This document shows positions 24,090-64,000 of a stretch of DNA of 64,000 nucleotides, piece after piece. The DNA is taken from positions 3,410,001-3,474,000 of the forward strand of contig OX337233.1 of NCBI GenBank assembly GCA_946965045.2, in the 5' to 3' direction. The translations under genes were made by a program, and so were the position numbers. This DNA is from Epithemia pelagica (lineage: Eukaryota; Protista; Bacillariophyta). Under the pieces are notes generated by a model. It ran no database searches. It was not told the origin of the DNA and saw only the letters and a program-made list of their open reading frames with translations. Positions within the stretch are counted from its first letter, which is position 1. Every line of letters begins with the position of its first letter.

Positions 24090-24283
24090 TGCCAGATGTT
24101 GGGTGTGCCTACTTGTGGCGATTTAACGACTACCGTTACACGACAAAGTGCTTGAGACGGGCATACGGTCAGACGGTCGTCAGAATGAATTTGCCCGAAA
24201 GAGACATCTATCGACCCGTGTGGCTTGCCATTTGCCATTGTACAAGTATTGTATGATATCTAACGTGGACCCATTCTCTTCTC

Positions 24284-25741: not shown

Positions 25742-25759
25742 CACGGACTTTGATTTCGG

Positions 25760-26051: not shown

Positions 26052-26199
26052 ACTGCATGGAGTTCAGCCCGAGAGCCCAAACAAGTTTTTCTTTTATCGG
26101 AGACAATCTATCAAGAGTTTGACCCCATGTGAGTACAACATGTATGCATAGGCCCTCACCTTCATGATATTTCAACAGCTCACACAGTTGGTGGATTTT

Positions 26200-38189: not shown

Positions 38190-39008
38190 TGTTAGAATTC
38201 TCACCGTCTATGGTGGTTAGATTCTACATCTCATCGATTCCCCATGTCACATAGCCTCGTGCTATCGCATCATGCCATCTAGCTTCGAGCTATGTTCCCT
38301 AGCTTCGCGCTATATCGACCTATATTTCTTTGCAAATCATGAAAAGTGAGAATAGATTGATGAACTCATTCTCAAGACTAAACTGGGTCGTGCAGTATTA
38401 CAACGGACGTAAATTTGGCCGTTGCTCGGACATTATACTAACGCCCTAAGCGTACGCGCCCGAAATCATCGAGCGCGCCCAAGCGACATCCGAGCGCTGT
38501 CGGCATCTATCCGACCCAACGGTCTAAGTATCCCAAGAACGACACACGATCACGCGAGACCATATTTCCATTCCCACAATCTCCAAATTGTCAACAAGCT
38601 GCGCGCCATGAAAACAACTATGCCAACCCAAAGCAAGAGCTGTTGACCCTGTATATGTTATCCGCCCACATATACATGTCATATACATCACATGAATCGA
38701 CTCCAACTATTCCAAACCTGTTGCCGCCAAGAACCTATGACACATGACCCTTGGCAGGACCGAACATTTCACGTAGACCTATCGTAGTAATCAACACACA
38801 ATCTAACAATATCACCATTTATCACATCTTCTTTTGTGTCCCGACTATCCTTCTGATAGACTTCGACTTGCTTGCTTCTCTGACCCTGAGAAGCTTGTAT
38901 CGGTTGGTGACCTACCTGATTGTCTGCTCTACCGAGCATCAATGTCCCTACGATTCAGAAAGAATTGTAACAGATTAACAGTCTCAAAGCTTATTTCCTT
39001 GTGGTTTC

Positions 39009-43630: not shown

Positions 43631-46600
43631 CATCTGAATCTCCATCCTCTTCGTCCAAGGTTAGTCTACCGCGTGACCTATGGTTCAAACTTTCTGAAGA
43701 AGATCGCAAGTTGATAATTGAGTATAACAAGATGATTCAAGCACCTTCATCGACAACACCGAGGAAAGTGCAAACACATGCCCTCGACATTGATCCGGAA
43801 CCTGATCCTGACCCCAACCAAGTTGCATCTGATGACGACTCACCTGGCGTAGTCCCTGAGCATCCAGATGATTCAGATCCGGTTACACAATTTATCAACC
43901 AAGCCATGACGACTGATATCAATCACTCGGCAACTGACCTGACTAGTGTTCTTTCTAACGCCAAGTCCAAGACGAGCAAGAAGGTTACTTTCAAAGCCAA
44001 CATGCATAAACAAGCAGGACATGTTCCACGCTATTTGTTTTCCAGGAAATCTACTTTACCAGGAAATCAATTGATTGACCGTGGTGCTAATGGAGGACTT
44101 GCTGGTTCTGACATGCGCATCCTTTCTAAGACTGGCCGCCATATCACTATTGTGGGTATTGATAACCATGAACTTACTGGACTTCCTGTCGTCATATGTG
44201 CCGCAAAGTTTGAGACCAATGATGGACCTGTTGTCGGCATCTTCAATGAATATGCTTATTATGGAAAGGGCTTATCTATCCATGCTCCTGGTCAATTCGA
44301 GCATTTCGGACTTGCTGTTGATGAACGATCTGTTAAAGTTGATGGTAAACAACGCATCACTACACTTGATGGTCGTGCTATACCCCTTCACATTAAGGAT
44401 GGGTTAGCCTACATCCACTCCTTGGGTATCCCCAACGACAATGACATGGATACCTTACCTCAGATCATCTTCACGTCACCCGACACATGGGATCCTGGTG
44501 TTCTGGACCATTCGTATTCTCCCACACCCTCTGACAATGATCCTGATTGGAAACACGTCAAGACTGATGGTAGTATGTCAAACCATCCATATGACAACTA
44601 TGGGGAGTACACTGATCGTGTTGTTTGTAACCTCAATCTCCTTTTGGATCTCCCATATGATCATGGACCTGACGATGCACCCTTCTTTTCTATCTATGCT
44701 GACACAGAAGGTAATGATCCTACACTTCATGCCTCTGTCCACCGTCGTTACCAGGAAGCGTATGACTGGAAGAAGTTCCGTCCATTCTTTGGTTGGCAAT
44801 CTGAAGATGTTATTGCCGATACGTTCAAGCACACTACACGTAATGGTAGCATTACTTTTGACCACGACACCCTCAAGAAACATTTCAAGGCTCGCAATCC
44901 GGTCCTTAATATACCTCGACGCCATGAACCCGTTGCTACTGACTCGGTTTTCTCCGACACCCCTGCTGTTGACCATGGCGGTAAAGTCGCACAAATCTTT
45001 GTTGGTCGAGATACTCTGGTTACTGATATCTATGGGATCAAGTCAACCAAACAGTTTGTCAATACTCTTCAGGACAACATCCGGTTTCGTGGTGCCATGG
45101 AGACTCTTATCAGTGATGGTGGTTCATCTCTCATCTCTCAAAAGGTCAAAGACATTCTTCGCACTTTGCTTATTGGGGAGTATCGATCCGAACCTTATCA
45201 TCAACACCAGAATAAGGCTGAAAACCGTTACCAGACCGTTAAACGTATGACCAACGCTCTCATGAATGCCACTGGTTGCCCTGCCAACACCTGGCTTCTT
45301 TGCCTTGAGTATGTCTGTGACTTATTGAACCATACGTCATCACCCACCCATTCCGGTCGCACTCCTCTTGAGGCTCTCTCCGGACGCCCACCCGACATTA
45401 CTCATCTCTTGTTCTTTCCTTTCTGGGATGAGGTTTACTACCGTGTCGACCCCGCTGAACCCAATTCTGGTTCATATCCATCTTCTTCTGATGAGAAACT
45501 TGGCCACTGGGTTGGTTTTGCTCACAACGTTGGTGATTCTTTTACTTGGAAGATTCTCACCCAGGATAACCAGATAATCTACCGTTCTGCCGTTCGCCGT
45601 GTTGAGTCCACTACACCTAACCTACGTGTGGATCGACCTTCAGGGGAGGATTCGTCTGAGAAGGATGACAATGATAAGCAAGCTGACACTGTCTTCATTT
45701 GCAGTGATAGTGAAGATCCATCCAAACCAATGCCCACGATCGATTTTGACGACATGATAGGACGCACATTCCTATGCGACACAGAAGAAAATGGGGAGCG
45801 ACACCGTGAGCGTGTCATCAAACGAGTCATTGATCTTAATGAAGAAGCAACGAAACAGGAAGAACGTGTCAAGTACATCTACCGAAAGACAAATTCTGAT
45901 GTTGATGAGATGATATCCTATAATCAACTCATGGAGTATATCGAACGAGATAACCAAGCTCAAACCTCTGGAGATAATCTTTTCAGGTTCAGGGACGTCA
46001 TTGCCCATCAAGGCCCACTGAACACAACTGATCCAGATTACAAGGGGAGCAAATATAATTTGCTTGTTGATTGGGAAACTGGGGAGACTACCTATGAACC
46101 TTTATCACTCATCGCCAATGATGATCCGATCACTGTAGCAATTTATGGAAAGAAACATGGTTTACTCAACGAACCTGGATGGAAGCATTTGAAACGTTAT
46201 GTCAAAACAAGCAAACGTCTCATTCGAGCAGCCAAACAGTCAAGGATTAAACAAGTTCACCATTCCGTCAAGTATAAGTTTGGATTCCAAGTACCACGCA
46301 ATTATGAGGAAGCTGTCGCTCTTGATAAACAACATGGCAACACAAAGTGGCAGGATGCAACAGAATTAGAATTGTCACAGATCCAGTCCTACAAGACATT
46401 CAAGGATTTTGGGAAAGCCATCTTCATTAAAGGGAAAGTATCCAATGCACCTGAAGGATATCATAAGATACGTGTACATCTTGTCTTTGACGTAAAACAT
46501 GATGGACGACATAAAGCAAGACTTGTCGCAGATGGACATCTCACAAAAGAACCTGTTGAGACAATCTATTCAGGTGTTGTTTCCATTCGCAACCTCCGCA

Positions 46601-48033
46601 TTGCCTTATTCCTGGGTACTTTGAATGACTTGGAAATATGGGGAGCAGATATTGGAAACGCATATCTGGAAGCCTTGACAGGGGAGAAAATTTTCATTGT
46701 CGCAGGACCTGAATTCAAGGAATTAGAAGGTCACATCCTGATTATATACAAGGCACTTTATGGATTGAAGTCATCAGGCGCACGCTGGCATGATGTCTTA
46801 TTCGATGTTTTGGCAGACATGGGATTTTCACCAAGCAAAGCAGATCCGGATATCTGGATGAGAAAAGCACCTGGAGAAGACTGTTACGAATACATTGCCG
46901 TATACGTTGATGACTAAGCCATTATTTCTACTGATCCTGGGAATATCTGCAAGATCCTGAAGGAGAAATACAACTTTAAACTCAAAGGAGATGGACCTAT
47001 TGATTTCCACTTGGGATGTTGATACACCAAGGATTCTGATGGAACATTAGTAGCAGATCCAAGACGCTACATTGGTAAGATGATGGACACTTTCGAACGA
47101 ATCTTCAAGGAGAAACCCAAGAAAGCCAAAACACCTCTTATTGGTGGAGACCATCCTGAATTGGATGATTCTGAGCTCCTTGATGAAGAAGGTACTAGCC
47201 ATTTCCAAACTCTGATTGGACAACTCCAATGGGTGATCACTATTGGTCGTTTCGACGTCTTCACCGCTACAATGACGCTATCACGCTTTCGTGCTGCTCC
47301 GAGGAAAGGACATCTTGATAGAGCCAAGCGTATCTATGGATACCTTGCACATCTACCAGAAGGCGCAATCAGATTTAGGATTGGAGAGCCTGATTATTCA
47401 AGTCTTCCTACCCAAGAATTTGATTGGACTCGCACTGTCTATTCGAATGCAAGTGAACGTATTCCTGAAGACTGCCCAACACCTCTTGGCCGCTATGTTA
47501 CCACAACTCATTATGTTGATGCCAATCTCATGCATGACATAGTCACTGGTGAATCCGTCACTGCTGTTCTACATTTGTTGAACGGAACACCTATTGACTG
47601 GTACAGCAAGAGACAGAGCACGGTGGAAACTGCTACCTATGGATCCGAGTTTGTGGCTGCAAGGACAGCAATAGATCAGATTACAGAATTACGACATTCT
47701 CTCCGCTACCTTGGAGTACCTATCCGAGAGCGAAGTTACATGTACGGAGATAACAGATCTGTTGTGCTCAATGCAACCGTTCCTCATTCCATACTATCCA
47801 AGAGACACCATCTTCTGTCATACCACCGAGTTCGTGAAGCCATCGCAGCAAAGTATGTTGCATTCTACTGGAAAGATGGAAAGACCAACCCTGCCGATAT
47901 CCTTAGCAAACATTGGGATTTCGTATCTATTTGGCCCATGCTCAAGCCACTGTTGTTTTGGAAAGGAGAAGTTCAAGACCTCAACAAATCCAATGATGAC
48001 AAGGCTGAAACGACGAGTTGTGGGGAGTGTTAG
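43631..48033 (+). pseudogene. Copia pol (protease, integrase, RT, RNase H) with two nonsense codons
   Basis: Protease LIDRGANGG, integrase ATDSVF/ISDGGS/AENRY, RT YVDD followed by TAA at 46915-46917, second in-frame TGA near 47020, RNase H YVDAN..AEFV-like GSEFVAA..DNRSV..NPADILSK. Confidence 0.92.
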
Positions 48034-48178
48034 AATTCTCACCGTCTATGGTGGTTAGATTCTACATCTCATCGATTCCCCACATCTAAGGAAGGAACGG
48101 TACGCCAGTTTATGGCAGTTTAATTATCGATAAGAAAGCACCCCTAAGCGCATCCTACTAGAATCATCCGCGCGCAGG

Positions 48179-48390
48179 ACACGCGCACACCTACAAGAAC
48201 ACGCGCACACCTACAAGAACATGCGCATGGCCCTTCCTCACGTTATTACTAAAAATGTGCTTTCCAGAACCAGCAAGCGCATGACCCACATTTCACCAAC
48301 TTCAACACCATGCACAGTCAAGAACCAATAGTCATCACATCCCTCCACCTTCATGCACAGTCAAGAACCAACAGTCATCACATACCCTCC
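48179..48390 (+). repeat. Subterminal short tandem repeats (20 bp x2+, ~38 bp x2 with period 43)
   Basis: acacgcgcacacctacaaga twice from 48179; catgcacagtcaagaacca(a/t)..gtcatcacat..cctcc at 48309 and 48352. Confidence 0.85.
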
Positions 48391-48590
48391 TATGTATGCA
48401 CTCATCCTTGATTGTGTCACATCACCATCATGCGCATTACTCCAGCATCAAGTGCAAGCAAGTTGAACACAGTGCATTTAACTAACACCATGCACACACT
48501 CCCACTAACAACCAGCGAATGAATGGAACACAATACATGTAGCTATATAGGAGTAGTATATGAAATGAAACCAATTGTCACTCTGATCAA

Positions 48591-50586
48591 TCACTGCCAC
48601 GACCGTTTTCGTGGCCTTTTAAAAGGCCTTGTCACAGCATCATCATCTGCATACCCCATTCGAGAGCGATATTGCCCATTGAGAAACATCATGAACCAGA
48701 TACCGCGGTCGCCTGCTCTGTCTTCACGAGCGATTTTCTCTTCCATATCCTCAAAATAGTCCATACCATCCTCTTTCATACATCGACTTGAGTTCCAACT
48801 GCCTGAATATTTGAAGCGAGGATACCTTGCTGAGGATGTATCAATCATTTGATCAACACCATTTTCATTGTACCACCTTGGATTTAATTCAAATAGTTTC
48901 GCCTTGAAAGTGGTCTTGCCCATGTGAGTCCACACATCCCAGCAATCCACAAGGATGGTCAATATGAACGCCTCGTCACTTGAAGTGAATAACTTCAAGG
49001 CCTTTTCGCAATGTTCCTTTCCCTGCTGCTCAGTGTGGTCACCAAAATTGAAATCAATCACGGTTTTATGCATATTCTCACCATAGACACATGGACCAAA
49101 CAATTGCAAGAGATATGAATAGGCATAGTTGTCACACTTCTCTCCTCTCAATAACAGAAATTCTTCCAGGGTAGGCTTTGGCCCAAAGTCTTCACAGTCG
49201 TTCAAAAGGCATGGATACCTCCGCTGGAAATTACTGTCACGCCATAGATCAAGACCCACGTGTTCTAGATTCAGCAACAAATTATCTCACATCTCTTTAT
49301 GAGAAGACGACGTGATGAACCAACACATTCACTCTTCGATTGACACTTACTTATGAATGCTTTTCGCATGGAAGCCAGAACATTTGATCGTTTGCTTCGG
49401 AACTTGTCAAGCATATAAGGTGAATGTTCAATCCACCACTCCTCTTGTTGTTTTGCATCCGTAATACCTTTGCCTTTGAAATAGTGCTCAGTAAAATATG
49501 TTTTGCCATACTTCCCCCAAAGACCATTCGGATCTGCCTTAGTATCTCCGGACATGGAGAAATACTTGACATAACGCCATGCCACCTTCCGAACAAATGT
49601 ATCAAAGAACTTCTCCGATACCACCTCAGGCTTTTTCTTCGGCTTTTGCTTCTTATTCTTGTCCTTTTCAACAGAACCTTTGTGTGTAGTGGATGTTACA
49701 ATCGTACTTGTCGGGCAAGATGATTGATTATGGTGTACTGTTGTTGTCTGTGTTTCCTGTGCCAACTGATTTTGAATATCGTCTTGTAGAAGAGTTTCCA
49801 TTGCCTGATCAGGCCCTGTTGTTAGCAAAGTAGATGACGAAGATGACGACATATCCGAAAGGGAAGAAACGTCGTTAGCAAAGGTATCACCTGATGCATT
49901 CAACCCACAAACACCCCCGTCATTAGAGCCGTCTCACCGACAAATTGTCCTCCTCCATTTTGTGCATCTAACAACTTATTGACAAGTCCTCCAGCAGGAA
50001 AATGTCTCTCATTAGGATCAAAATCATCTCCATCATACTCACTGGGTCCATTGCTCATATTCTGCAATGCTCGTTGCATTTCAGGTCCAGTGAGAATATT
50101 TACACCGACGTCGTCTTCCTCCATGTTATTAACTGCCGTGTTTGTTGGTTGCGCAAAACCAGATGATGGTTGTGTTCTCAGCCCACCCTGTTCATTATTG
50201 CTATCATCTGCTGAAGTCACATCAGCTCCATCTCTTTCTGAATTTGTTGCCTGCTCCAAAAGATTACCACTCCCTTCCACAGTTGTGCCTTCTTGTGCTT
50301 GTGCTTGATCGTTGTTCATCGAGATCTGTTCCTCTTCTTCCTCGTCATCAGAACTATCTTCTTGGAGTACTAAACCTTCATTGGCTGCTGCAATAAGAGC
50401 ATCTTTGTTTGTAATTGTCCCGTCCTTGTTAGGAAGATTCTCTTTATTTCTTGTTGCCACTGCTGCCAAGATGCTTCTTCGTTGTCGTTCAACCTCTTTC
50501 TGATTACTTCCATAGTTTGCATTTCGGACTGCTAAGGGTCGACGCCTCGTTGGAGCTGCATTTCTGGTGGTGACTCCTGCCATCAT
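48591..50586 (-). CDS. Transposon-associated accessory protein (multi-exon; T-S-D-E-A-F-I-L..W motif)
   Basis: Three abutting ORFs. The gtaagt...tag intron 49265-49350 joins 49351-49903 in frame to 48591-49264. The junction near 49900 is a frameshift or an unresolved intron. Transcribed divergently from the transposase. Confidence 0.65.
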
Positions 50587-51147
50587 TTATCTTGGATGCT
50601 CCGTCTGATTTATGACAAGGATGTGAACAAGAGCAGGGTAACAACAAGTCCTCTGATGGACAACCATTCAAATTCAAATGTTGGAATGCTCCATGTTTGA
50701 ATCATAAACTCCGTGTTTGAACGATTGTCCTTTGGAGAACGTATGAAGATGAGCATAGGTGGTTTCAAGTACATCATACTTGTCAGATGGAACATTGGTG
50801 CATGGGTTTGAATGATTGTCATTTCCTTTCTAATGTCGACAGTGTCGGTATCCTCGGCATTGACACAGTGTTTGAATTCCAATCGCTGCTATCACCGTTG
50901 GTATCTAACCCGGCAGGCTGGATTGGATTAAGTAAATACACACGACCGTTTGAAAATATTATGATCCGTTCATGTACATAAGCGATTTTCAGTCGCTTTT
51001 ATGCACCAACGTCGGCCGATCCACCCAATGCGGAGAAATTCTGATATATGCCACAAGATTGACCACCGATGTCTCAATTTGCAGAAATCGATTACAGAGC
51101 ATTTTTCATTCCAAACCAAAATCTAAAACCACCAGCATCGTACCATC

Positions 51148-54100
51148 ATGGGCCAGCGTCGTAAAGTAAAAAAGAAGTCACGAAAGAGATGCTCAAATAC
51201 AAGCCAACAAGAGGAGTCCTTCATATCCTTTCAAGTGTGTCGTTTCTGTCAATCACGTTTCGATGCAAGAGGAATCAGCCGTCACGAAACAGTTTGTGAA
51301 TTGAAAATGAACACACAAAGGAAATGGCCAAATGTTGGCAATGACAACAATGATTGTGCCAGTAATATGAATGCTGATCCAATGAATATTGATATCATGG
51401 ACGATGAAACCACTATTCCGCATGCTGACCCACCAAAAGCATACTATGTACCTGGTGATACAGATAATATTATTCTGCGCAACAGCAAGGAGTGCCCGGT
51501 TGATTTTCCTGCGTTCCTTGATAGAGATGGGAAGCAATTGAAACTTCATAAACAGGATGCAGCCTTGGTCTCACTTATGATGTTACTTCGGAAAGCTGGT
51601 TGCCCCAAATATTTGTACAATTCGATCCTGGCATGGTCGAGTGACACATACTCAAGATGCGGTCCTGGGTTCTTCCTGGACAACCATTCAAAGAGGAAAA
51701 CGTTCATCGAAAAGTTTTCTACCAAAGGTTTCAATTATCCCAAGGCAAAATTTTTCCCGGTACCAATGGAATTCACCCAAAAACAGGGTGTGGTTGTACC
51801 AGAGAGTGAGAAATCAATAACAACAGCAGTATTTGATTTGATCAGTCAACTACAGCGTGTATTACAAGATCCCGATGCAACCAAGAAAGAAAATACGATC
51901 CTCGATGATGACGATCCGTATCGTCCATATGTTCCAAACAAGCACATCCAAAATATACAAGACGGAGAAGTATTTCGGAAAACAGTGGAAAAATATAGAG
52001 ATGATCCAGATGCCTTCGTGGTTGGTCTTGTCTGTTATATGGACAAAACACATGCAACAGGGGATGGAAGATATACATCGGAGCCTGTTGTAATGGTGCC
52101 ATCTTTTCTAACGGAAACACAAATGAGGAAAGCAAGGCGACAGATCATCCTTGGGACTATTACAGACATGGAAAGAAAATCATCGGCGGCAAAACATATC
52201 CTCGATAAAGGGACTCCTTGCCGAAATTATCATGCTCAATTGACTAAGATCCTCGAAGGTCTTGTCAGTATCCAAAAACAGGAAGGTTTTTGGATGAAAC
52301 TACGCCTCCATGGGATTATCAAAGTTGTCCGTTTGATATTGCCAATGATTGTTGTCAAAGGAGACGGGAAGTCTCAGGATAACCTTGCAGGTCGGTATGC
52401 CTCGCATCATCCAAGTGTTGGAAGACTATCATGGTGTTGCAACATTAAACCAAGGGATAGCAGATACCCATGGCATGAATGTTCTTATATCAACGCTGCA
52501 AGTACATACAAAATGTGCTTGAATGCATTGGGTCTTAATGAAAATCGAGAAAAACTGACTGAACAGGATGTTGATTACCAAGAGAGAGACAATGATACAT
52601 TTTCGACTTTGACTGTTCCTACCTGTTTCAGCACATCGCAAGTAAGTCAAGAAAATAGCAGAGATGGAGGGGTCAATACCCTTGTGTCAGCTGCAAAAAC
52701 CCAATTGCATGACATGGGACAATATGCAGTCGATCTTTGTTTTTCCAAGGTTTACCTGGGTGAAGGAACCAATTCTGAACATGGGATTTTCTCGGCCAGT
52801 AGTTGTGATGTTCTTCATACATTGAAATCTGGGATAATGAGATACATCATGATTGACTTTTTCACGTATATGACAAAAACTGAACGGGCCATGTTTGATT
52901 ATGTCTACAATTCAATCTTACGGGCAAGTAGACAGACTGTATTCTCCTATTCATCGAAACTTGGATATCCCGGAACATCATTCTCGACCGGGATCAGTAA
53001 CCTGTCAAAAGTAACTGCCAATGAGTGGGTAGGGATCATGTTTGCTTCAGCAGCTCTATGTGCCACTGCCAGAGGTCGCCTTATATTTGCGAAGAATATG
53101 GCAAAGAAATGGAACAAGGTGGTTGCGGAATGGAAAAAACGACAAGCAAAGCAAATATCCAAAACCACCAACAAGACATGTCAAGCGGACGTGGATCAAG
53201 TGCAAGAGACAAGTGAACCTATTGCTGACAATGAGGATGATGCTCCACCAGATGAAGAGTACAAACGTACACGTCTTGATGATGATGATAGTGTTGACAT
53301 TGATATCACTGCTGAAACTGTTTTTGATGATGACCCAGTTGCTTACAGGTCTATCTGGGATGTTGATGAGCGGGAACCATACATAGACTTCCTGCATCTA
53401 TTCGAGACTCTTTTGTGTTTCAACAGCTGGATTCGTATGGATACATTCTGGGAAACAGACCCAGACTCACAAGAAGGACAAACAACAGCATCCAAGTCTC
53501 TCGAATCAGTGCGGATTTTGATGGATGGCATCAGGAGATATGCACCCAGGCTCGATAAAAAAGGCAAATTGATGTCCAACGGGTGGATGATACCAAAATT
53601 CCACAATCTCATACACATTATACAACAGATTCAGAATTTTGGACCAGCACGACTGCTTGATGTGGAGTCAGAGGAAAGTAATCATAAGGAAATTGTGAAA
53701 TTGAATGCAAAAACGGTACAGAAACGTGGAAAAGGAATTTTTGAGTCGCAACTTGCAGAAAATATCTGGTGGATGCAAAGCTTGGAAATGCTGCAGGAAG
53801 CAACAGGTCTTGAAGAAGATCATGTCACCTTTCTCCAGGAAGGGAAGTCGCCTTATGAAATAAGGAGAAAAAAGGGATCCCAAAACCAACTCCCTACCAC
53901 ATCAACCTCAAATAGCCGTGGAACGGTCATAGTAGTATCCATGACCAGAGAAAAATGTTTGATTCCAATACCTCACACGAACGTACATACTTCTGGTGAT
54001 AATCAAGACCAGTCATCAAATGAAATAGACAAGGATCTTCTGTCTCCATTGGGTATGTCAATTCAAGTTCCAGGCATGACCAGAAAAGAACAAGACGGAT

Positions 54101-55005
54101 CAAACCGAAACCAGACGAGTAGTGTACACAGGCGATTGACAGCAGCACCACACGAGGAGGATGTGGTATCAGTGAATATCGAATTCCATTCCAAAACAAA
54201 TCATGACATGACATTGCCACAGTTTTGTAATCACTTCTTTCGATTACATTACAAACGCTTTTTTCATCATATAGACAGGATGAGTGATGATCCAACAAAT
54301 GAGACTTCAACCACACTGGAATTGTTCGGGAGCACAGAACTTAAGTTCGAAGACCCCAGGATCGGAAATATACGGGCTCATCCGAATTATCAAAGCGAGG
54401 GGCCATGGAGAGATTGGGTGATGGCTAAAGTTCCAAAGAAAAAAAGGAAACCTCTTGACGAGGTATACAACCAACCTCTCGGAGAATTTGATACCATCCT
54501 ATGTCAAACGATATGCTTCATTCAAATACCCATTACTCGAACAGACCACATACAAATACAACCATCACCGGTATGTCAACCTTCAACTTCACCCGAGATG
54601 ACCCATGTCCTTCTCCGAACGACATATGTACGGAGTGCAGCTGATATCGAGAAATCATCCGTTCTCTTTCAAAAATGGCGGAAGCGTTTTGACCTACATC
54701 GAATAGCTGAAATTGTCATGGTTCCACTCCGGAATATTGTTGAGGTTGTTGGTGTAGTGGATGAGAACCCAGAAATGATTCAAGACCGTGATTCTATCCC
54801 AACATATTTCCATTCTTCACTTGAAAAAGATTTGCTCCAAGAAGACAGTCGTAATTTGAGAAACTTTAGTGACAATGTCTGGGCCGTGCGCAACATCAAA
54901 GAATGGGCTTCCGAATTCAATGAAAGTGCCCGTGACAATCTCGAGAAACGCTGTAATGAAATGAAAGAAAGATTGAAACAATCCGTCAGCAATTCGACCT
55001 CATGA
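51148..55005 (+). CDS. Plavaka-family transposase
   Basis: 1285 aa intact ORF. N-terminal C2H2-like finger CRFC..GISRHETVC; catalytic-core motifs YMDKTH, YHAQLTKIL, KGDGKSQD; PKFHNLIH..IQNFG..ESEESNHK; C-terminal RAHPNY..WRDWV. All typical of Plavaka transposases. Confidence 0.88.
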   Translation: MGQRRKVKKKSRKRCSNTSQQEESFISFQVCRFCQSRFDARGISRHETVCELKMNTQRKWPNVGNDNNDCASNMNADPMNIDIMDDETTIPHADPPKAYYVPGDTDNIILRNSKECPVDFPAFLDRDGKQLKLHKQDAALVSLMMLLRKAGCPKYLYNSILAWSSDTYSRCGPGFFLDNHSKRKTFIEKFSTKGFNYPKAKFFPVPMEFTQKQGVVVPESEKSITTAVFDLISQLQRVLQDPDATKKENTILDDDDPYRPYVPNKHIQNIQDGEVFRKTVEKYRDDPDAFVVGLVCYMDKTHATGDGRYTSEPVVMVPSFLTETQMRKARRQIILGTITDMERKSSAAKHILDKGTPCRNYHAQLTKILEGLVSIQKQEGFWMKLRLHGIIKVVRLILPMIVVKGDGKSQDNLAGRYASHHPSVGRLSWCCNIKPRDSRYPWHECSYINAASTYKMCLNALGLNENREKLTEQDVDYQERDNDTFSTLTVPTCFSTSQVSQENSRDGGVNTLVSAAKTQLHDMGQYAVDLCFSKVYLGEGTNSEHGIFSASSCDVLHTLKSGIMRYIMIDFFTYMTKTERAMFDYVYNSILRASRQTVFSYSSKLGYPGTSFSTGISNLSKVTANEWVGIMFASAALCATARGRLIFAKNMAKKWNKVVAEWKKRQAKQISKTTNKTCQADVDQVQETSEPIADNEDDAPPDEEYKRTRLDDDDSVDIDITAETVFDDDPVAYRSIWDVDEREPYIDFLHLFETLLCFNSWIRMDTFWETDPDSQEGQTTASKSLESVRILMDGIRRYAPRLDKKGKLMSNGWMIPKFHNLIHIIQQIQNFGPARLLDVESEESNHKEIVKLNAKTVQKRGKGIFESQLAENIWWMQSLEMLQEATGLEEDHVTFLQEGKSPYEIRRKKGSQNQLPTTSTSNSRGTVIVVSMTREKCLIPIPHTNVHTSGDNQDQSSNEIDKDLLSPLGMSIQVPGMTRKEQDGSNRNQTSSVHRRLTAAPHEEDVVSVNIEFHSKTNHDMTLPQFCNHFFRLHYKRFFHHIDRMSDDPTNETSTTLELFGSTELKFEDPRIGNIRAHPNYQSEGPWRDWVMAKVPKKKRKPLDEVYNQPLGEFDTILCQTICFIQIPITRTDHIQIQPSPVCQPSTSPEMTHVLLRTTYVRSAADIEKSSVLFQKWRKRFDLHRIAEIVMVPLRNIVEVVGVVDENPEMIQDRDSIPTYFHSSLEKDLLQEDSRNLRNFSDNVWAVRNIKEWASEFNESARDNLEKRCNEMKERLKQSVSNSTS

Positions 55006-55201
55006 TCATAATTTGCCTCTATGGGGGGTTGTCACATACCAGCACTTCCCCTCCTAATCTCCCCCCCAACCGTACGCGAGCCGACCAATTCAACTCAGAG
55101 TGTCACACACAAATTGGATGAAATAGTAGATACTTTCCATCGTTTTCCAAAAGTCATCCTCAGTCTTCAGTCAGTTAGGCTATTCTACTCCTCTTCAAAC
55201 A

Positions 55202-56489
55202 ATGATCAACCCATACAAATCGAGGAAGAAAACAGTTCCACCCTTGGTGGTCAAACCAAACTTTCCAGTCACAAAGATACCTCCATCTAATGAAGAAATG
55301 ATGATCAACCCATACGAGCTAGAGGAAATAGGGACTCCCATGGTCAAAACGCACTCTCCAACCCCGAAAACTTGCGACGGTGAACATGACAAGAAGCCAC
55401 CGCCTGCGTCCAAATCAATAATCAAATGTCATCCACTTCCTTCTTCTAAGCTTGACACCAAGGAAGAAGAAGAGAAGAAACTTCCACCAATCAAGCGCCC
55501 ATCGTATCAGTTGATCCCAAACCCATATAAGAAGAAGCTCAAGGTTGCTGATCCATCTACTATTCCAATCTTGCTATTACATGACTCTCCTCCGATGTGT
55601 AAACCAAGAGCAAACCGAGATAAGCTGCATCTCGAAGTTATTCGGTTCACTGAGCTTGTCAATAAAATCTATGGATCCAATGATGTTCCCCCAGAGCCAG
55701 TCTGTCCTTGGTGTTTTGTAACCGACAACCTTTCAACAGATCGTAGACTTACAGGAAAATGTTGGCATCGCTTCGGTAAATCTCTCTCATGTGCCGATTG
55801 TTGTTATGGTTGTGGAGTGCCCATGAACGGATGTGATTCAGGTGGGAATGAACGTTGTTGCACCAAAGCCCTGTATATCCATGATTCGATGAATATCACA
55901 CGCAAAGAATCAGACATAAACAAGGTTCCATTAGTGTGTAAGTCTTGCTTAAGGCCATGCAATTCTTATTCAGAATGCGTCTTCTCGCATGGTTGTTGGA
56001 ACTCTTGCAACAAGTACTTCGTCTGGCGATTCTGTCATATTGCTGGACGGGCGTTGGTGTACTCACAATTGAAGCCCAATTGCAAAGGACCAGGCACGAT
56101 TCCCAAACATGCACAGGATATTATCAAAAACGCAACAGAGTTGATGTACAACGAACTGCGAGATCCGATGGAGTCTTCTCAGTACACATCTCCATTTTGT
56201 CATGTTCTTGACCAAGACTCCTGGTCTAAATGGCTTGTCTCCATGTCTTTTGGTCGAGTCGATTAAACATGCACAGGATATTATCAAAAACGCAACAGAG
56301 TTGATGTACAACGAACTGCGAGATCCGATGGAGTCTTCTCAGTACACATCTCCATTTTGTCATGTTCTTGACCAAGACTCCTGGTCTAAATGGCTTGTCT
56401 CCATGTCTTTTGGTCGATTCTACAATTACATGCCGTTCTTCCGTCATTGTTACACAGCCTTGATGTCTTCATCGAAACCATTGTATTAA
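55202..56489 (+). CDS. Cys-rich protein A (frameshifted by an internal duplication)
   Basis: CPWC, CADCCYGCGVP, CKSC, NKYFVWRFC, WSKWL. The conserved tail FYNYMPFF..C is displaced out of frame by the 56105-56417 duplication. Confidence 0.7.
56105..56417 (+). repeat. 153 bp tandem duplication (period 160)
   Basis: 56105-56257 and 56265-56417 are identical, with the linker gtcgatt. Confidence 0.92.
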
Positions 56490-56550
56490 ACAAACTCTCG
56501 ACTTCTTCGAAAGGCAAACTGGGAACAGATAACAAGATTTATAATATATG

Positions 56551-57603
56551 TCAATGATCATTACCATCCATATTTCCACGTTCCAACTCCGCCGTCTCAG
56601 CCATTCTTTCGAGATAATTACGGAAGCACCTGACAAAGAGTGGCATGTAGTTGCGAAAACCAGCCGTAGAATGAGGCAACGAAAGCAACCATACTGCCCA
56701 TGTTTTATCAGATGATCGGGCATAATCGTATGGGGCACAATCGTTATCATCACAATAGAAACGGGATCGCAATTCCTCAAGCCAAACGCTGCGGACAATA
56801 GTAAACATTGGCCAGGTGATTTGACGGGGAAAGTTCACACCATCGTAAAATGATGTTATTTGAAAAGTACGCGCCACAATATGGCGTATGAGCATACAGA
56901 ACTGCCACACGAAGTGCTTGTTCTCAGATTCCACACAGACACTGCATGAATCCAAATCTGGTTGTGGAATCCCAAAAGGTATTGAGCGTTTGGGAATTCG
57001 GAAACATTCCCTACACACCTGACAATGAAATGTTGGATGCCTGTGGCGGTGACATAAGTTACAACGCATCAAAAAATTCTGCTGCCAGATAACCGAATAA
57101 TCGAGATATGCCGCACGTGTTACCACTGTAGTATTTCCATGATTGCACTGGTGATGTGGTGTGGGACGACCAAGGATAACACAGTATGGACAGAGTTTCT
57201 CACCTCTAAGCATTTCGTCCACCAACCGTTTGAATTCAGTCTGGATTTCATGACCGACACGCATCTCTTCTCTGAGTTGTTCTATGACTTGTGGTACATC
57301 TTCTTCTTCATTATCGTAATCAAAAAAGATCCTCCCAGCGTCCCTGTAACAAGGCCGATCATTCACTTCCAAGTTCCTGTCGTTGATCGCCTGCATTTCT
57401 CGTCGTCGTCTACGTTCCCGAACATAAAAATCTTCTTCCTCCGATTCATCTCCCGATTCATCCTCCGGTTGGTCCTCCGGATTGTCAGCCATTCTGTTTG
57501 CAGTCTCCTTCTCTTCGTTTTGATGTGAATGCAAATACCTGTACTTGTTGCTTCTTCTTTGGATTTTTATGAAACCTCTGCTGTCATATGAACGAGAGTT
57601 CAA
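56551..57603 (-). CDS. Cys-rich protein B, paralogue of A
   Basis: CPYC, CNLC, CQVCREC, CSVC, NKHFVWQFC, WAVWL..FRNYMPLF..C; acidic N-terminus. Confidence 0.75.
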   Translation of the reverse strand: MNSRSYDSRGFIKIQRRSNKYRYLHSHQNEEKETANRMADNPEDQPEDESGDESEEEDFYVRERRRRREMQAINDRNLEVNDRPCYRDAGRIFFDYDNEEEDVPQVIEQLREEMRVGHEIQTEFKRLVDEMLRGEKLCPYCVILGRPTPHHQCNHGNTTVVTRAAYLDYSVIWQQNFLMRCNLCHRHRHPTFHCQVCRECFRIPKRSIPFGIPQPDLDSCSVCVESENKHFVWQFCMLIRHIVARTFQITSFYDGVNFPRQITWPMFTIVRSVWLEELRSRFYCDDNDCAPYDYARSSDKTWAVWLLSLPHSTAGFRNYMPLFVRCFRNYLERMAETAELERGNMDGNDH

Positions 57604-57747
57604 CTGGAAATAGATCCACGGATAACCGATCGGTCGCGTTTGTGTACAGAAATCGTCACACTATACTATTCACTGTGAGTATTACCACATACTGTGAGGA
57701 TAAGTGTAATCATTCCCAACATGGTCGCGTTTCACTCGCTGGGCTGA

Positions 57748-58017
57748 CCTATCGGTGTGCCTTTGCAAAATTCCATGGACATGGAACAATGACATGCTTC
57801 TAGAACTCGAATGGCTCCAAATTTTCGTAGAGACCATTTGGGTATCATTTGCATGGACAGTAAAGGCTCTGAACTTGTCTATCATCAACCAAAAGACTTG
57901 CAATAGACCCTACCGGTGTGGTGTTGCCGTCGTCCCAAAATTCTATGGACATGGAGCAAAGACATGCTTCTAGAACTCGAATGGCTCCAAATTTTCTAGA
58001 GACCCTTGGGGTATCAT
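57748..58017 (+). repeat. Imperfect direct repeat (~85 bp core, period ~170) in an intergenic spacer
   Basis: aaaattc(c/t)atggacatgga..gacatgcttctagaactcgaatggctccaaatttt..gagacc..gggtatcat at 57767 and 57937. Confidence 0.85.
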
Positions 58018-58083
58018 AGGCAGTGATTGATGGTAGGTAGTGGTTTGCTGATAGGTGGACATGGTCTTGTATATTAGAAATCT

Positions 58084-61000
58084 CTATTCGTCACTAGATT
58101 TCTGGTCCGACGCCAAGCCTCCAATTTCATGAGAATTGTCATCCTCGTTTTGTGTTACGGTAGCACTCAAAGATCTTGCATTTGTGCTAAAAAACCAACC
58201 AATCGTATGATTTCCCACATTCTTGTCTTTCGGTGGTATGGAGTGTGTATGGACAGATGTTCCATGTCTGATGATTCTCCCGTCCCATGCGATCGCAATG
58301 CCATGGAATAACCGGATACAAAGCCCATGATAAGTCTTGTCCTTATGCTTTATAAGGACATTGGGAAGGACGAAATACCAATCGTTGGTGCTGCCCGGGT
58401 TGGTTTCTGTCCAGATTGTAAAGGACACTGATGCATCATGAATATCATAGTGGCTTGCATTCATCAAATCGCAACTCAAAATGATGGATGATGACACACC
58501 CCTTTCGTTTCCTCCCAATTTGTTTGGGACATCCAAACCGAAGTTTGTTTCCAGGTGTCTGAAAGCCGATAACACACCAGGGAATTTCCTCTCACAGAAT
58601 CGCCGAACACCTCCACAGATTTTTGGCAATATATTCATCATGTTTGGAGATATTTTGAAAAGTTTGTCAGAAAAGAATGTACTTCTGCCACCCGTTTTTG
58701 TGCACACACCAACAGATGTCATGGTCCCCATATCACCATGGTTACACCTTGCATTGGCTGATCTCTCTAGTGTACCGCTCTGCGCGAAGTGACATGACCT
58801 CTTGTGTAACAATGAAAGTAGGTTTTTGTCATTTTGCTGAAGTGTTGTCACTTTGACATGGCTGATGGTTTCGTTTTTACCCGCGTACCCACGTGTCCGA
58901 ACAATGAATGTTGTATCTTCTCCGGTTTCCCTTACATCAAACAGGAGCGGACGGACCGAAGTATCAGGCGGAGGGGACAGGTTTCTATACAATGCTCCAT
59001 GGACGTACTTTCGGCATCCAGTCTTGTTAGCACTGGCTTTATTCAGCAGTGTTTCACGATACCACACTCTAAGAGAATGTTGGTCATTTGGTGTCATTTT
59101 TGGTCTCGACTTTTCACTTGTATAATGATCAGGGGCCCAAAGTGGAGAACCACTTTCGACATCAGACGCTTGGTAGCATTCATGGACAACTCTCTTTGCA
59201 CTTTGTGTCCAATCAATACACCAACACTTGACAACCTTTTTGAGGAATGCCCCACCACTTGGTTGGCCGTCGGAATGTCGTAAGCGCAGCCAGGATATAG
59301 GTAGTGCTACCAAAGATGAAGTGCATTCCGATGTTGCATACCCAGTATTCATTATCATTGCCGAAGTATAAAAAATACCGGCCAAAGGGATGATAACGAT
59401 CACGTCATGGAAAATATGGTCCATACAATCATCACAGTTTTTCTTGGATGTGCGACAATGGAAGATTGTATCGTCAAACGCAGACCACACGGTTTTGGGG
59501 TATTTCCGATGTCCCTTATGTCGTTGACAGCGATTCAGTACACATTCTACTAAGAAGGCACATGGAGACCGGGTTGTTAAGAACTTCGGGTCACATTCTG
59601 TCACATGAAGCTTGTTGTCTTCGAAACAACAATGGCTTGCTGGATCTTCCGTCACCTCACCAACCATGTCTTTCATTTGTTCGTACATGTTAGGTAATTT
59701 TCCCATGATTGTCTGGAGGTCTGTTGGTGTGATGTCGTAGTCTTTCAGAACCTTTGTATAGCAGATGCCGAACATTCTCCGATCATCATTGCTACTGAGA
59801 CAGAGTGATAGTAAGTCGCGTAGTCTTTTTGCTACCTTGTCCATGTCAGGAATTCCAAAAAAACACATTTCTGTATGATCGGATTCATTTGGTTTGGAGA
59901 ATTTTGTCGTCAAATGGCTAGGTTTCTCAGCCTGTCGTCTCATATACTTCTTCATCGTTTCATGTGTTAGTGTCAACTTCGATAGGCCTTCTTGTCGTCG
60001 TTGCTTGTTTGTGGGTAGTCCCCTGGATGAACCAATGGTCTTACATCCTTTTCTTTTCCTTTCCGGTGAAGTATTCTGTTCGTCGGTATCGTCATGATTA
60101 CCGTGTATTGGAGACTCGTGAATCTCCTTCGTACCTCGTTCGTCTTGTATGCGCTGATCCGTTTGTGCTGTCGTGTTGATGCTACTTCCCTTGTTATGGT
60201 CGTTTTTTGTCATTTGGTCATCGTTGTTCTTGCTGCTACCTTTTTGTTTGTCGGTACTATCCTTTCCTTCTTTGGTTTGTGTCGCATCATCTTGGTTGAC
60301 GCTGTCATTGTGACAGCTAGACGGATTATCACTGTCAGGTGTGTTGTTGGCATTCTTAGACCCGTTATCTCCTGAATTTCCGTGTTGTTCGTAAGCAACA
60401 ATCTCTTGCTTGCCACATTCCTTGCCCTTTTGTTTGTCTGTAGAACCGTTGCCATCTCTGCTTTGTATCTCTTCCCCTTGTCCACATTCATCTTGGTGAC
60501 TGGAGGTTGCTTTCTGACCGCTCTGTCTGTTCCGATCATCCCTCTCCTGATTGTCCTTGGAATTCCAACCAAGTTTGGATAGGCCATCCTGCCCTCCACG
60601 ACTCGCTGTAGTGTGATGAATGTCCTTTTCTCCCTCTCTACGAGGTGATTGATTTGGTTGACTATTACCTCTATCAGTTGAGGGACGGTTAGGCTCTCTC
60701 TGACGGGTACGCCTAGAATGATCGTTGTGTCCAGGATGACTGTCTCTAAGTGACAAATGGTGCCTGGAATGTTCGTTGTATCCAGGGAATCTCTCCCAAT
60801 CCATCGGATGTCGATTAGACCATTGATTGTGGCTATCTCTGTATACCGAATGGTGCCTTGTATGTTCTCTGGAATGTTCGTTGTATCCAGAGAATCTCCT
60901 CCAATCCATCGAATGTCGATTAGACAATTGATTTTGATTATCATGTCTTCTTTTTCTATCCCGGTAAGTGTTTTCCATGATTTGATCTCTTCTCCCTCTA

Positions 61001-64000
61001 GACTCGTCTTGGTGGTTATCATGGTATCCATGTTGGTCTTGTCGTTCAATGACTCCTCTTCTAGTTTGTTGGTTATCTTGGTCGAAATGTGAATGACGAG
61101 ACCCATGATAATCTGATGTATTAGATCCTCTCGATCCTGGATGATCATCATTGAATCGATTCTGTCCATGCTGACAATAGACTGGCCTGTCATGTTCAGG
61201 TTGCGAACCCCACTCATTTGTTCTGGGGCTTCGAGCTGTCGACAGGACGTTGTTCTGATTCCGTCCTCCCCATACCCCATGTGGATTCTCTCTCTTGTCC
61301 TTGGTTCTTTCGTTATCATGTTGGGTTTGCTCTGTTCTATGTCTTTCTTCAGGCAGCTCACTCCGGTTACCCCAATTCGCAGGCATTGCAACGGAACGTG
61401 ATAAGTTATTTCCTCCCCATTGCTGGTATTTATGCTTCTCACCCTCTGGTGACTGATAGATTGCTTTGTGTTCAGAAGGATGAGTATATGTTCTTTGAAC
61501 AGAACGTGTCATAGGACAGAAGTACAATAGACTTTGAATATCCTGGCTGCACACCATACATGTGTTGTGGCCCCGCTGCATCCAATCTCCAACACATTCC
61601 CGACAAAATGTATGTCTACAAAGAAACAGTTCGCAATCCACTTTTCTGGTCATACAAATCGAACAAACCTCGGGCTTGTATTTTGTCTCAACTCCTCTTT
61701 GTTCTAGTGTTGACGGCTTGTTACTCACAGGTGATTTTTTTGATGATTCTTCAGGGCGTCCCTCGATCGTAGTTGTAGTGTCTTCGACTGTTTTCCTATG
61801 TCCCTCTTCAGGGAATCCCTCGTTCGTAGTTGTACTTTCTTCCGCTGTTTTCTTGTGTCCCTCTATCTTCTCCGCACCAAACATGTGGATGTTACTCTTG
61901 ATCTTTTGTCCACACTGGGGACACCATACATTATGATACTTGAACCGTATTTGTAAGCAATTTCCGTGAACCAGATGTCCACATGGGATGAGGGTACAGA
62001 CTTCGCTGTCTGTATCTGTTTTCAATGCCCTGTTACAGCATAAACAAGAATCTGGACAATATACAACGGTCGGTAGCAATCGATTTATATCTCTCTTGAA
62101 AAGTTTGGAGTCAAGTAACACCTCCTTGGGTTCTAATCCCACCTTCGGGCACGGTATGAACAATATGTCACCATCCGTAGTCCACGTCTCTGAACACCCA
62201 CCATCAGATAGATCGACGTTCTCCTGGTATTCGTATTTATCGGTACCACGTGAAAACCCCACTTCAACAGGATCGTCGTCGCTGTTGCCATCGAAATTGT
62301 CAGGTCCCAACACCAAAGGAGAAATCGAATTGCCACCAACAGCATGCTCTAGTCCTCTCGAAAATTCATTATTGTACCGTATTTGATTACTCGAAAAACA
62401 ATTGGATATCGTCATACTCTTGTCTATCTGACCTTCTTTCCGACCCGGGTTTGGTCGACTACTCATTATGTTTCCAAGCATTCTGATCACAATAGCTTGT
62501 GGCATAGGCTTTGGAGTATCCTTCTTAGGTTCTGGCATTTTCACAATGCGATATCGCCACTTGTTACATTCCTTGTTTGTATCATGTGTTGTTTCATCTT
62601 CTTCCACTAATGATGGGTCATAACATAGACTGACAGGCGGGGCACCTTTTGACGTATTGACCAGGTCCCATTTCCGTAGTACATGACGCGTCGTTCCTTC
62701 CCAGTATTGGTCTGATCGATTATTTATTGGTTCGTAGATATGAAGTATCTTTTTGTCGATTTCGAAAGCCAATAAAGCTGGGTCGCTGACATTAGTTGCT
62801 GTTGTCAAGGCAATGATCGCCAATATCAGTGTGTTCGGATCCTGTTGTCTCCATGATGACATAGGAATTTTCTTAGGAAATGGGTTCCTGTTTGCTTCAT
62901 CAAATGTTACCTTGTCAACATATACTAGGTTCTGATGGTTGTGATGGACCATCAATTTCAAACAAGTATAGAAAGACTCAATCGGCATGCCCGTCCTTGA
63001 AGTGTTGTAGCAAAGATCTCTCCGACGATGTCTATGTGGGATATGCAAAACACGCGTTGTAGGGTCCTGGTCATTCATCAACCCACTGTAAGACATGCAT
63101 AGTGTGCACCTAAATAATGTCTTGATTTCGACATGCGTGTTGTCCTTCCCCATACTCTTAGCATACTGGGTTGCTAGCTTCATGGCCGACTTGATGTTCT
63201 CGTTGTTTCTGTTAGCTTGTTTTTCCGCGAACTTGTCTAAGTAACCGGCACCAATGTTGTCGATGGATTCATTCGAGTCCCATGAGTCTTTTCTTCTCTT
63301 CTGGTTTACTATAGGATCAAGAACGTGTGGAATTTCAATGAAAGGCGGTGGTACCACACCATCACCTGTCTCCTCATTTCCCTTGTTTATGGAAGCACAA
63401 CGTCTCTAAGACAAAGAGATCAATCATTTTTGAGATTGTCTAATCCTTCTCGATTCTTGGCAAGTCGCTCGAACATCTTACCTCGTTGTCTGCGGTTTTT
63501 TCATTGTCGTCGCTTATAATCTTCCTGACCTCTTCCACACGGTCTGATTTGAGGGCAACTTGGTTCGACGTTGTAATGGAAGTTGGTAGTACTTGTTCCT
63601 TTCTCTCGTCAGTAGGATCATTACCAGCGACGACCTTCTGTCTCTTTTTTGCTGGTGAGTCTGTACTCCGACGTTGCACGGCAATTTCTTTCGATTTCCT
63701 GGCAGACAGTACCTCTTGTTTTTCTATATAATGCAGTAGATCGTAGAACATACCGCCATCGTCTCCGTTTCTTCCATATTGTACCAAAGAATCTCTTTCT
63801 TCAAGGTACATCTTGAACCATGTGTCAGGCATCGTATACAACAGTGCTTTCTCCATTTGGATATTGGAAATCATGTCCATGTTCTCGTCCGATGTCGATT
63901 CTGAGATGAAACGGTGTATGGCCACCATATGTTCGATAACCCATGCGATTTTACCAACAGGTACGAGACGCGGTTTCCTGTAAAGGGAGGAATCATCTAG
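58084..64000 (-). CDS. Large RING-RING-TET/JBP-like dioxygenase protein (5' end outside the window)
   Basis: Exon 58084-63405 joins exon 63482-64000 in frame via the gtaag...ttag intron 63406-63481; the frame stays open to the window edge. RING-H2 at ~61910-62046, RING-HC at ~61549-61666. C-terminal SHYD (58444-58452)..WDGRIIRHGTS (His 58264-58266) Fe(II)-binding triad. Confidence 0.8.

Follow-up and report, generated by a model that had tools for sequence, protein, structure and literature searches.

A Plavaka-lineage DNA transposon family with a predicted RING-TET dioxygenase cargo in the diatom Epithemia pelagica

Why would a cut-and-paste DNA transposon in a diatom carry a giant gene that joins RING fingers to a domain resembling the TET/JBP dioxygenases, enzymes of 5-methylcytosine (5mC)? 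The question is raised by a 64,000-nucleotide stretch of the Epithemia pelagica genome (the window; G000:C6:3410001-3474000), whose right part, from position 48083 onward, is a copy of such a transposon. An earlier reading of the bare sequence (the original prediction) took this part for one mobile unit with a Plavaka-type transposase, a divergent accessory gene, two Cys-rich paralogues, and a TET/JBP-like gene, and proposed that it modifies 5mC to escape silencing; all the genes and features that it listed were found at the coordinates it gave. The best explanation, held here as moderately probable, is a young Plavaka-lineage family whose RING-TET cargo modifies 5mC to weaken the silencing of the element. 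Coordinates (Table 1) follow window numbering, continued beyond 64000 into the next 10 kb of the contig (L013).

The transposon family and its transposase

What defines the element? The window copy belongs to a family of autonomous, cut-and-paste elements of ~18.4 kb, of the Plavaka lineage (CMC/EnSpm superfamily). When the window and its continuation are aligned with six sister loci (on contigs C2, C17, C16, C11, C8, and C3), the left boundary falls exactly at 48083: colinear homology with all six copies begins at 48082/48083, and the left flanks of the sisters are unrelated until the element start, CATCTAAGG. Full copies are 18.39-18.55 kb long, with pairwise identities of 98.7-99.7%; they open with 5'-CATCTAAGGA... 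and close with ...TTCCCTCCTTAGATG, which together form a 15-bp terminal inverted repeat (TIR) with 14 of 15 positions matching. Each of the six full sister copies is flanked by a 2-bp target-site duplication (TSD; GA, GA, AT, AG, CA, and GA), an outcome with a chance probability of about (1/16)^6. These common boundaries, TIRs, and TSDs bear out the view of the locus as a single mobile unit; the right terminus that the original prediction expected is present with its 2-bp TSD in the six sisters but absent from the window copy.

Because the copies are 98.7-99.7% identical, the family is young. Genome-wide, it is represented by at least 25 right termini and by at least 10 full-length transposase copies at 96-98% identity. 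Its gene set is constant: from the left, an accessory gene, the DDE transposase, two genes for Cys-rich proteins, and the giant gene with its two exons. Toward the right end, the full copies also have a subterminal tandem array of units of ~160-197 bp, present in 2-2.5 copies (L016:2638-3354, equivalent to ~65107 in extended coordinates), and, 60-100 bp before the terminus, two copies of the motif AAACTGCGCATA. One family copy (G000:C13:2964-12620) sits ~3 kb or less from a contig end.

To which lineage does the transposase belong? No Pfam model matched the window protein, a word-indexed homologue search (with the single sequence and with a two-sequence profile) returned its own 98% cluster alone, and a metagenome scan with the transposase alignment found no relative. 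The connection comes from the cargo side: metagenomic contigs that carry homologues of the TET-like gene also carry convergent proteins of 1100-1263 amino acids (aa) that are homologous to the window transposase, at 25% identity over 573 aa for L037 (BLASTP E 4e-43; phmmer 1e-60) and at E 2e-30, 1.5e-16, and 2e-16 for L035, L038, and L034, respectively. Two of these proteins match the Plavaka profile PF18759 above its cut-off of 26.3 bits (L037, 46.6 bits; L038, 39.9 bits), and D299, D406, E843, and H819-x3-H823 are invariant in a five-sequence alignment of the window protein with its Plavaka-positive relatives. A feature search of the ESM Atlas, which serves as a lead only, ranks Plavaka clusters first (0.98) and Transposase_21 next (0.93).

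The ends of the element agree with this placement. PlavakaB elements have 2-3-bp TSDs and the termini 5'-CATCA..TGATG-3', and all TET-carrying Plavaka are PlavakaB (Kojima, PMC12730594); the diatom family ends in CATCT..AGATG, with four of the five terminal bases as in PlavakaB, and has a TSD of 2 bp in six of six full copies. By transitive homology and by the structure of termini and TSDs, then, the transposase appears to be of the Plavaka lineage: what the original prediction proposed holds by way of L037 and L038, but not as a direct match to PF18759. CACTA/EnSpm sensu stricto was considered and rejected: CACTA termini and a 3-bp TSD are absent, the termini being CATCT and the TSD 2 bp, and the transposase has no match to PF02992 (Transposase_21).

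The RING-TET gene and its proposed role

The giant gene is predicted to consist of two exons joined in frame by a short GT-AG intron, with a spliced product of ~2148 aa. The original prediction had seen a gene of more than 1900 codons with an HxD...H motif; such a gene is present, but its first exon runs beyond the window to 64606. Exon 2 is open at eight other loci of the family (family 1) as frames of 1757-1776 aa. Exon 1 is 28% identical (E 7e-28) to the N-terminus of the RING protein of a related family (family 2), in which the homologous N-terminal and RING parts form one uninterrupted 1003-aa open reading frame (ORF), which supports the predicted exon join. In a search of sequencing runs, no RNA run contained the stretch; the three runs compared are genomic contigs that read through the predicted intron without a break. 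From its N-terminus, the protein comprises a conserved region, a RING-H2 finger (~438-488 in the 1757-aa ORF), a C3HC4 RING finger (565-603), a 600-residue low-complexity linker, and the C-terminal dioxygenase domain. RING matches are the only ones that Pfam gives (E up to 10) for all ORFs of the element: the second finger scores above the cut-offs of PF13920 and PF00097, zf-RING_2 is matched at 34.3 bits in two stretches, and the complete eight-ligand cross-brace motif, the criterion for a RING-type E3 ubiquitin ligase, is present.

What is the C-terminal domain? It has 17 close relatives in a sequence search, without Pfam domains, and a profile search extends the set to 1180 cluster representatives at E up to 1e-3. 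The AlphaFold2 (AF2) model built from the 17 sequences (pLDDT 77, pTM 0.83) resembles TET enzymes: Foldseek ranks TET2 first (E 6.6e-8), followed by CMD1, CcTet, and NgTET1, and VIA-align gives Z = 17.6 for TET2 (279-283 residues aligned, rmsd 4.2), 14.4 for CcTet, 14.1 for CMD1, and 14.0 for NgTET1, with AlkBH3, FTO, and ABH2 at 10.9 or lower. A shape search of the ESM Atlas returned Tet_JBP (phage), PF20515 (basidiomycete Tet-like), and one Bacillariophyta cluster. PF20515 is weakly matched by 4 of 64 relatives (best E 0.0014), with no match to the window protein or, in a genome scan, to the element; the single hit of PF12851 (Tet_JBP) in the genome scan, 15 bits at E 0.34, lies outside the element. 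The model thus points to a TET/JBP-fold dioxygenase of a family that has no Pfam model.

These matches also bear on another possibility: that the domain is an AlkB-like repair or RNA-demethylating enzyme, or some other non-TET enzyme with a double-stranded beta-helix (DSBH), unrelated to 5mC. AlkBH3, FTO, and ABH2 do match it, with Z of 9-11, the Tet_JBP profile is negative, and the pattern of 2-oxoglutarate (2OG) binding is atypical. But every TET-family structure outscores the best AlkB-family match, by 3 to 7 Z units, and aligns over 230-283 residues, with the part that precedes the core included, whereas AlkB-family alignments cover ~190; the spacing of HxDxxD agrees with TET2, NgTET1, and CMD1; and among the 64 relatives scanned, PF20515 is the sole Pfam family to match more than one. 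An AlkB-like identity is therefore most improbable.

Residue conservation, counted across the 64 relatives, sharpens the picture. H417, D419, and D422 are invariant, H479 is found in 63, R478 is R or K in 61, and R318 is kept in 62. The same spacing occurs in TET2 (H1382/D1384/N1387), NgTET1 (H229/D231/D234), and CMD1 (H345/D347/D350), in all of which the last residue hydrogen-bonds N4 of the flipped 5mC (PMC7854593). Placed by motif spacing alone, D422 would occupy this cytosine-N4 contact position, the best argument in the sequence for a cytosine substrate. The TET/JBP identity of the original prediction is upheld as to the fold, closest to TET structures, and the HxD...H residues; it lacks a PF12851 match and the Rx5-aromatic Arg. 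An assignment to the PE type of fungal TETs was rejected, since that type has HxE and HxD is invariant here. A different architecture occurs in metagenomic relatives (P0147, P0148, P0119, and L036:13781-16417), where a DEAD/Helicase_C helicase is joined to the TET-like domain or encoded next to it.

Does the transposon own this gene, or merely carry it? Lists of genomic transposase and TET-domain matches, compared by hand, place a transposase and a TET-like gene together at 15 of 15 family-1 loci, with the same spacing and orientation, and at about 12 of 17 loci of family 2, whose transposase is 51-59% and whose TET domain is 43-59% identical to those of family 1. The family-2 representative (L033, an ENA contig) has the transposase, both Cys-rich orthologues, the RING protein, and the TET-like gene, the last as a separate 647-aa ORF apart from the RING protein. 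On four metagenomic contigs (L034, L035, L037, and L038), the TET-like gene and a homologous transposase converge, even at transposase identities as low as 21-25%. The co-occurrence at other loci that the original prediction had foreseen is thus found in family 1, in a second family, and in the metagenomes; and since the pairing recurs in very divergent relatives, the dioxygenase is a long-standing functional cargo rather than a chance passenger.

Two side observations concern further TET-like sequences. L033 also encodes a cysteine protease of the Ulp1-like type (Peptidase_C48, E 7e-4) and has a second, more divergent TET-like fragment of 34% identity (L033:1821-4190, minus strand, and L033:1-1107). 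A third TET-like group, 34-40% identical and with frames of ~620-650 aa (G000:C5:847000-932000, C2:4855230, C7:2231245, and others), is partly clustered on contig C5, with no transposase match nearby in the scored lists; its members could be host genes or the cargo of other elements.

If the gene matters to the element, its copies should bear the marks of selection. Substitutions were counted by codon position in the seven-copy alignment. Third positions are in excess in the transposase (23/20/57 at positions 1/2/3; p=3e-6), in the TET domain (5/6/19; p=0.002), and in Cys-rich protein A (7/4/16; p=0.013); the counts are 6/9/16 (p=0.08) in Cys-rich protein B and 14/18/22, with no excess (p=0.41), in the linker. 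At 18.6 substitutions per kb, the TET domain is the least diverged of the coding segments compared. These counts indicate that the transposase and the TET domain are under purifying selection.

Linkage and selection together speak to the idea that RING-TET is a captured host gene, a passenger of the kind found in gene-capturing CACTA and MULE elements, amplified without any role for the transposon. Capture of host fragments is common among transposons of this superfamily, clear purifying selection is missing from the RING and linker parts, and many TET-like loci at 34-40% identity, such as the C5 cluster, lie away from scored transposase matches. Yet the pairing with Plavaka holds in two families (~45-59% protein identity) and on the four metagenomic contigs (21-25%), the TET domain combines the lowest substitution density with a significant third-position excess, and the catalytic residues are all intact in the copies examined; a passive passenger is very unlikely.

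Is the element a target of the silencing that such an enzyme would counter? The copies have 369 private substitutions, of which 181 are C>T or G>A; 91 of these 181 transitions fall on the 1370 CpG cytosine/guanine positions, which make up 17% of C/G sites. The transition rate is 6.6% at CpG, five times (ratio 5.0) the 1.3% of other sites (Fisher p=1.5e-25). Such an excess is what deamination of 5mC classically leaves behind. Several C5-DNA methyltransferase domains are encoded in the genome; the five-fold excess and the host methyltransferase genes together indicate that the element is targeted by cytosine methylation, and the deamination signature fits the proposed silencing conflict. For the model diatom Phaeodactylum, methylated cytosines are reported to lie largely in transposons (PMC12344493, PMC9998398).

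An anti-silencing role of the RING-TET protein is moderately probable. The dioxygenase would flip out 5mC and oxidise or otherwise modify it, acting on the element's own DNA or more widely; methylation-based silencing would be weakened and transposase expression maintained. The RING fingers could add ubiquitin-ligase activity against chromatin or silencing factors, or they could serve self-regulation.

What tells against this explanation? On the side of the transposase, PF18759 is not matched by the window protein at E up to 10, nor anywhere in the whole genome; the C(2)C motif is degenerate, with CxxC in the relatives and SWCC in the window family, in which the second Cys (C431) alone is retained; and the AF2 model of the transposase core, from a two-sequence alignment, has a pLDDT of 30. 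On the side of the enzyme, PF12851 is unmatched by the window proteins (Pfam, E up to 10), and the TET-like domain retrieved nothing from the PDB, whether by sequence or by profile. The Arg of the Rx5-aromatic motif, which contacts the C5-carboxylate of 2OG (R1896 in TET2, R289 in NgTET1), is not conserved: six positions before the conserved aromatic (F/W504), the window protein has His, and the 64 relatives have H in 23 cases, N in 12, R in 7, and S in 7. TET-like enzymes can also act on thymine, N6-methyladenine, or RNA. The RING/N-terminal part shows no third-position excess (13/26/20; p=0.12). Finally, the CpG scar indicates that copies became methylated despite the enzyme, so that any escape would be at best partial.

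With the Rx5-aromatic Arg missing and R478 and R318 conserved, co-substrate binding or chemistry may differ from that of canonical TETs. This opens the way to a bolder version of the anti-silencing explanation, unlikely as it stands: a TET-fold enzyme without the classical 2OG Arg, similar to CMD1, that would use another co-substrate or make a new base modification on methylated CpGs, its RINGs directing it against host silencing and chromatin factors or coupling it to their destruction. If true, this would be a previously unknown transposon-borne DNA modification system in diatoms, and the TET-Plavaka partnership would be an ancient one that spans fungi and stramenopiles.

Could the dioxygenase serve transposition itself? 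It might place a base mark, such as a hypermodified 5mC of the 5-glyceryl-methylcytosine (5gmC) type or a J-like thymine derivative, on element DNA and so regulate end binding by the transposase, strand choice, or protection of the excised DNA, with the RINGs controlling protein turnover. The unusual set of arginines is in keeping with this, the position of the gene next to the transposase is strictly kept over deep divergence, and the Spm element of maize, a member of this superfamily, has proteins that interact with the methylation of its ends. CMD1, one of the structural matches (Z 14.1), uses ascorbate and makes 5gmC (PMC7854593). Set against this, D422 favours a cytosine substrate, and is silent on the product. 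A function in transposition is doubtful as the main explanation; it is compatible with anti-silencing, the two being neither mutually exclusive nor separated by present evidence.

The window copy, its insertion site, and the accessory genes

Where did the window copy land, and what has happened to it since? The transposon is inserted into the 3' long terminal repeat (LTR) of a Copia retrotransposon. The truncation of this LTR by the element, noted in the original prediction, is confirmed by a 55-bp stub that matches the LTR found intact from 38190, where it starts with TGTTAG directly after another Copia pol ORF. The two Copia pol regions, 34377-38244 and 43585-48082, share a downstream LTR start, TGTTAGAATTC...; the LTR of the second breaks off after 55 bp.

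The other end is damaged. Homology of the window copy to the family ends at 65989, 72 bp short of the family right end, so the right TIR is lost and the copy is probably immobile. Positions 65990-68412 are a 99.6% copy of 36550-38972 (the end of a Copia pol and the LTR start); the right junction is not the remainder of the interrupted LTR. On the simplest reading, a later deletion took the last 72 bp and ran into a neighbouring Copia. A nested insertion was rejected as the cause of the missing end: none of the 25 family right termini lies on contig C6, and the junction is internal Copia sequence, not an LTR start. Farther right, 65990-74000 (L013:1990-10000) consists of blocks 99.6-99.8% identical to 2999-8632, 16857-18510, 24101-28308, and 36550-38972, stretches made up of Copia fragments and further repeats; such near-identity suggests that repeats of this region recombined or were segmentally duplicated very recently.

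Compared with the six sisters, the window copy also has a private 160-bp duplication near 56105, at the 3' end of Cys-rich gene A, a deletion of ~607 bp in the subterminal tandem array, and small in-frame indels. Its 91 private substitutions in the seven-copy alignment place it among the older copies of the family. Its transposase and giant genes are still open.

Three genes complete the element. The left accessory gene is probably spliced, with a candidate 47-nt GT-AG intron at its c/b junction; it has no Pfam match (E up to 10) and weakly matches the gene that neighbours the L035 transposase (E 3.8e-5). Cys-rich protein A has an orthologue in family 2 (40% identity, E 1e-69); Cys-rich protein B has no Pfam match and no usable ESM Atlas relative. 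The original description of A and B as paralogues appears correct, if for a distant and weak relationship: they are 27% identical over 90 aa (E 2e-5), and a cross-match is found in family 2. Elsewhere in the genome, there are at least 11 full-length silicon transporter (SIT) genes, with several tandem pairs on C11 (G000:C11:1001834-1006098, 3159754-3166955, and others); these genes mark the host as a diatom.

Table 1. Features of the transposon copy and its left flank in window numbering; coordinates above 64000 lie in the adjoining stretch of the contig.
Feature	Position	Strand	Basis or remark
Copia 3' LTR stub, first 55 bp (TGTTAG...)	48028..48082	+	100% direct repeat of 38190-38244
DNA transposon copy, Plavaka lineage	48083..64000, on to 65989 past window	+	Colinear with six full copies at 98.7-98.9%
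Left TIR, CATCTAAGGAAGGAA	48083..48097	+	14/15 bases as in reverse complement of family right end
Left accessory gene, three consecutive ORF pieces	48591..50586	-	ORF pieces kept in all copies
Transposase, 1285 aa, intact	51148..55005	+	DDE; at least 10 genomic copies; two relatives Plavaka-positive
Catalytic D299	52042-52044	+	
Catalytic D406	52363-52365	+	
Catalytic E843	53674-53676	+	H819-x3-H823 also present
Cys-rich protein A	55202..56266	+	354 aa in window copy, 375 aa in other copies examined
Cys-rich protein B	56551..57603	-	Orthologue in family 2
Giant gene, exon 2, 1773 codons	58084..63405	-	Contains 1757-aa ORF 58084-63357; Pfam RING matches
Predicted TET/JBP-fold dioxygenase domain	58084..59700	-	AF2 model, structural matches, invariant residues
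Distal H479	58264-58266	-	
H417-x-D419-x-x-D422	58435-58452	-	
RING finger 2, C3HC4	61531..61671	-	PF13920, PF00097, PF13639 above or near cut-offs
RING finger 1, RING-H2 (C-x2-C...C-x-H-x2-H-x2-C...C-x2-C)	61894..62046	-	Second zf-RING_2 stretch, Prok-RING_4; ligand pattern from translation
Predicted intron, 76 nt, GT-AG, phase 0	63406..63481	-	GAG/GTAAGA...TCTTAG/AGA; both ORFs stay in frame
Giant gene, exon 1, 375 codons from ATG to predicted donor	63482..64000, on to 64606	-	388/402-aa ORF in all copies

Relation to known TET-carrying transposons and TET enzymes

How new is this combination? TET cargo had been described only for fungal transposons; here, the carrier is a Plavaka element of a diatom, and its TET-like domain is RING-fused and of an atypical type. 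The searchable literature holds no description of a TET-carrying Plavaka element in diatoms, nor of a TET-type enzyme or an active 5mC-removal pathway in these algae, in line with the original prediction, which knew of no described diatom element with this gene set. The CpG-transition excess and the purifying selection on the transposase and TET domain are new observations, and the finding extends TET-carrying Plavaka beyond fungi to stramenopiles. A young, multi-copy family with its own TET-fold enzyme and a scar of CpG methylation offers a natural system for the silencing arms race outside fungi, and the RING fusion and atypical co-substrate site may mean new chemistry. NgTET1 has served in sequencing tools; the large TET-like family (~1180 cluster representatives, no Pfam model) is a resource for enzymology and, possibly, for such tools.

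In fungi, TET-carrying transposons now comprise 11 transposon lineages in three fungal lineages (PMC12730594); the link to basidiomycete transposons on which the original prediction drew is real as an instance of TET cargo but outdated in scope. The closest parallel is the TET-carrying PlavakaB of Agaricales (Kojima 2025, PMC12730594; first noted by Iyer et al. 2014), likewise a cut-and-paste element with a Plavaka-lineage DDE transposase, a TSD of 2 (or 3) bp, and as cargo a TET/JBP-type dioxygenase that has been proposed to help the element evade silencing by 5mC. The termini of both begin with CATC (CATCA..TGATG in the fungi, CATCT..AGATG in the diatom element). The PlavakaB host is a fungus, and the fungal cargo is of the PE type with HxE (PMC12730594), whereas HxD is invariant in the diatom element. 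Only the latter has a RING-fused dioxygenase protein of ~2148 aa, two Cys-rich genes, and a left accessory gene, and its transposase is too divergent for a direct PF18759 match.

A second parallel comes from a non-fungal alga. The giant Plavaka elements of the red alga Bostrychia moritziana, with PAG1-3 as cargo (bioRxiv 10.1101/2025.02.11.637652), are of similar size (17.4-19.1 kb), have several accessory genes that include a 2OG-oxygenase-like domain and tandem repeats near the cargo, and have likewise been proposed to modify their own chromatin or DNA (bioRxiv 10.1101/2025.02.11.637652). However, PAG3 is a ParB-fused oxygenase whose best HHpred match is of the phytanoyl-CoA-dioxygenase type, not TET, PAG2 is a 6mA-methylase-SET protein, and the red-algal elements are without RINGs; the two systems are compared by description, and the PAG domains were not detected by Pfam in the window genes. 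More remote are VANC of Arabidopsis VANDAL elements and the SET-domain genes of Phytophthora HarbingerS and MuDR elements: these, too, are transposon-borne factors with a proposed or demonstrated anti-silencing role, but in the passages of PMC12730594 that treat them, they are unrelated proteins with unrelated mechanisms.

At the level of the enzyme, the diatom domain shares with TET2, CcTet, NgTET1, and CMD1 a common DSBH fold with its upstream elements (Z 14-17.6 over 228-283 residues), the HxD...H iron triad, and an Asp or Asn three residues after the HxD Asp. R318 may correspond to R1261 of TET2 and R244 of CMD1. The identity between the diatom domain and the solved TETs is ~8-12%, and they differ where 2OG is bound: R1896 of TET2 is replaced by His, and an Arg or Lys directly before the distal His (R478) is conserved instead.

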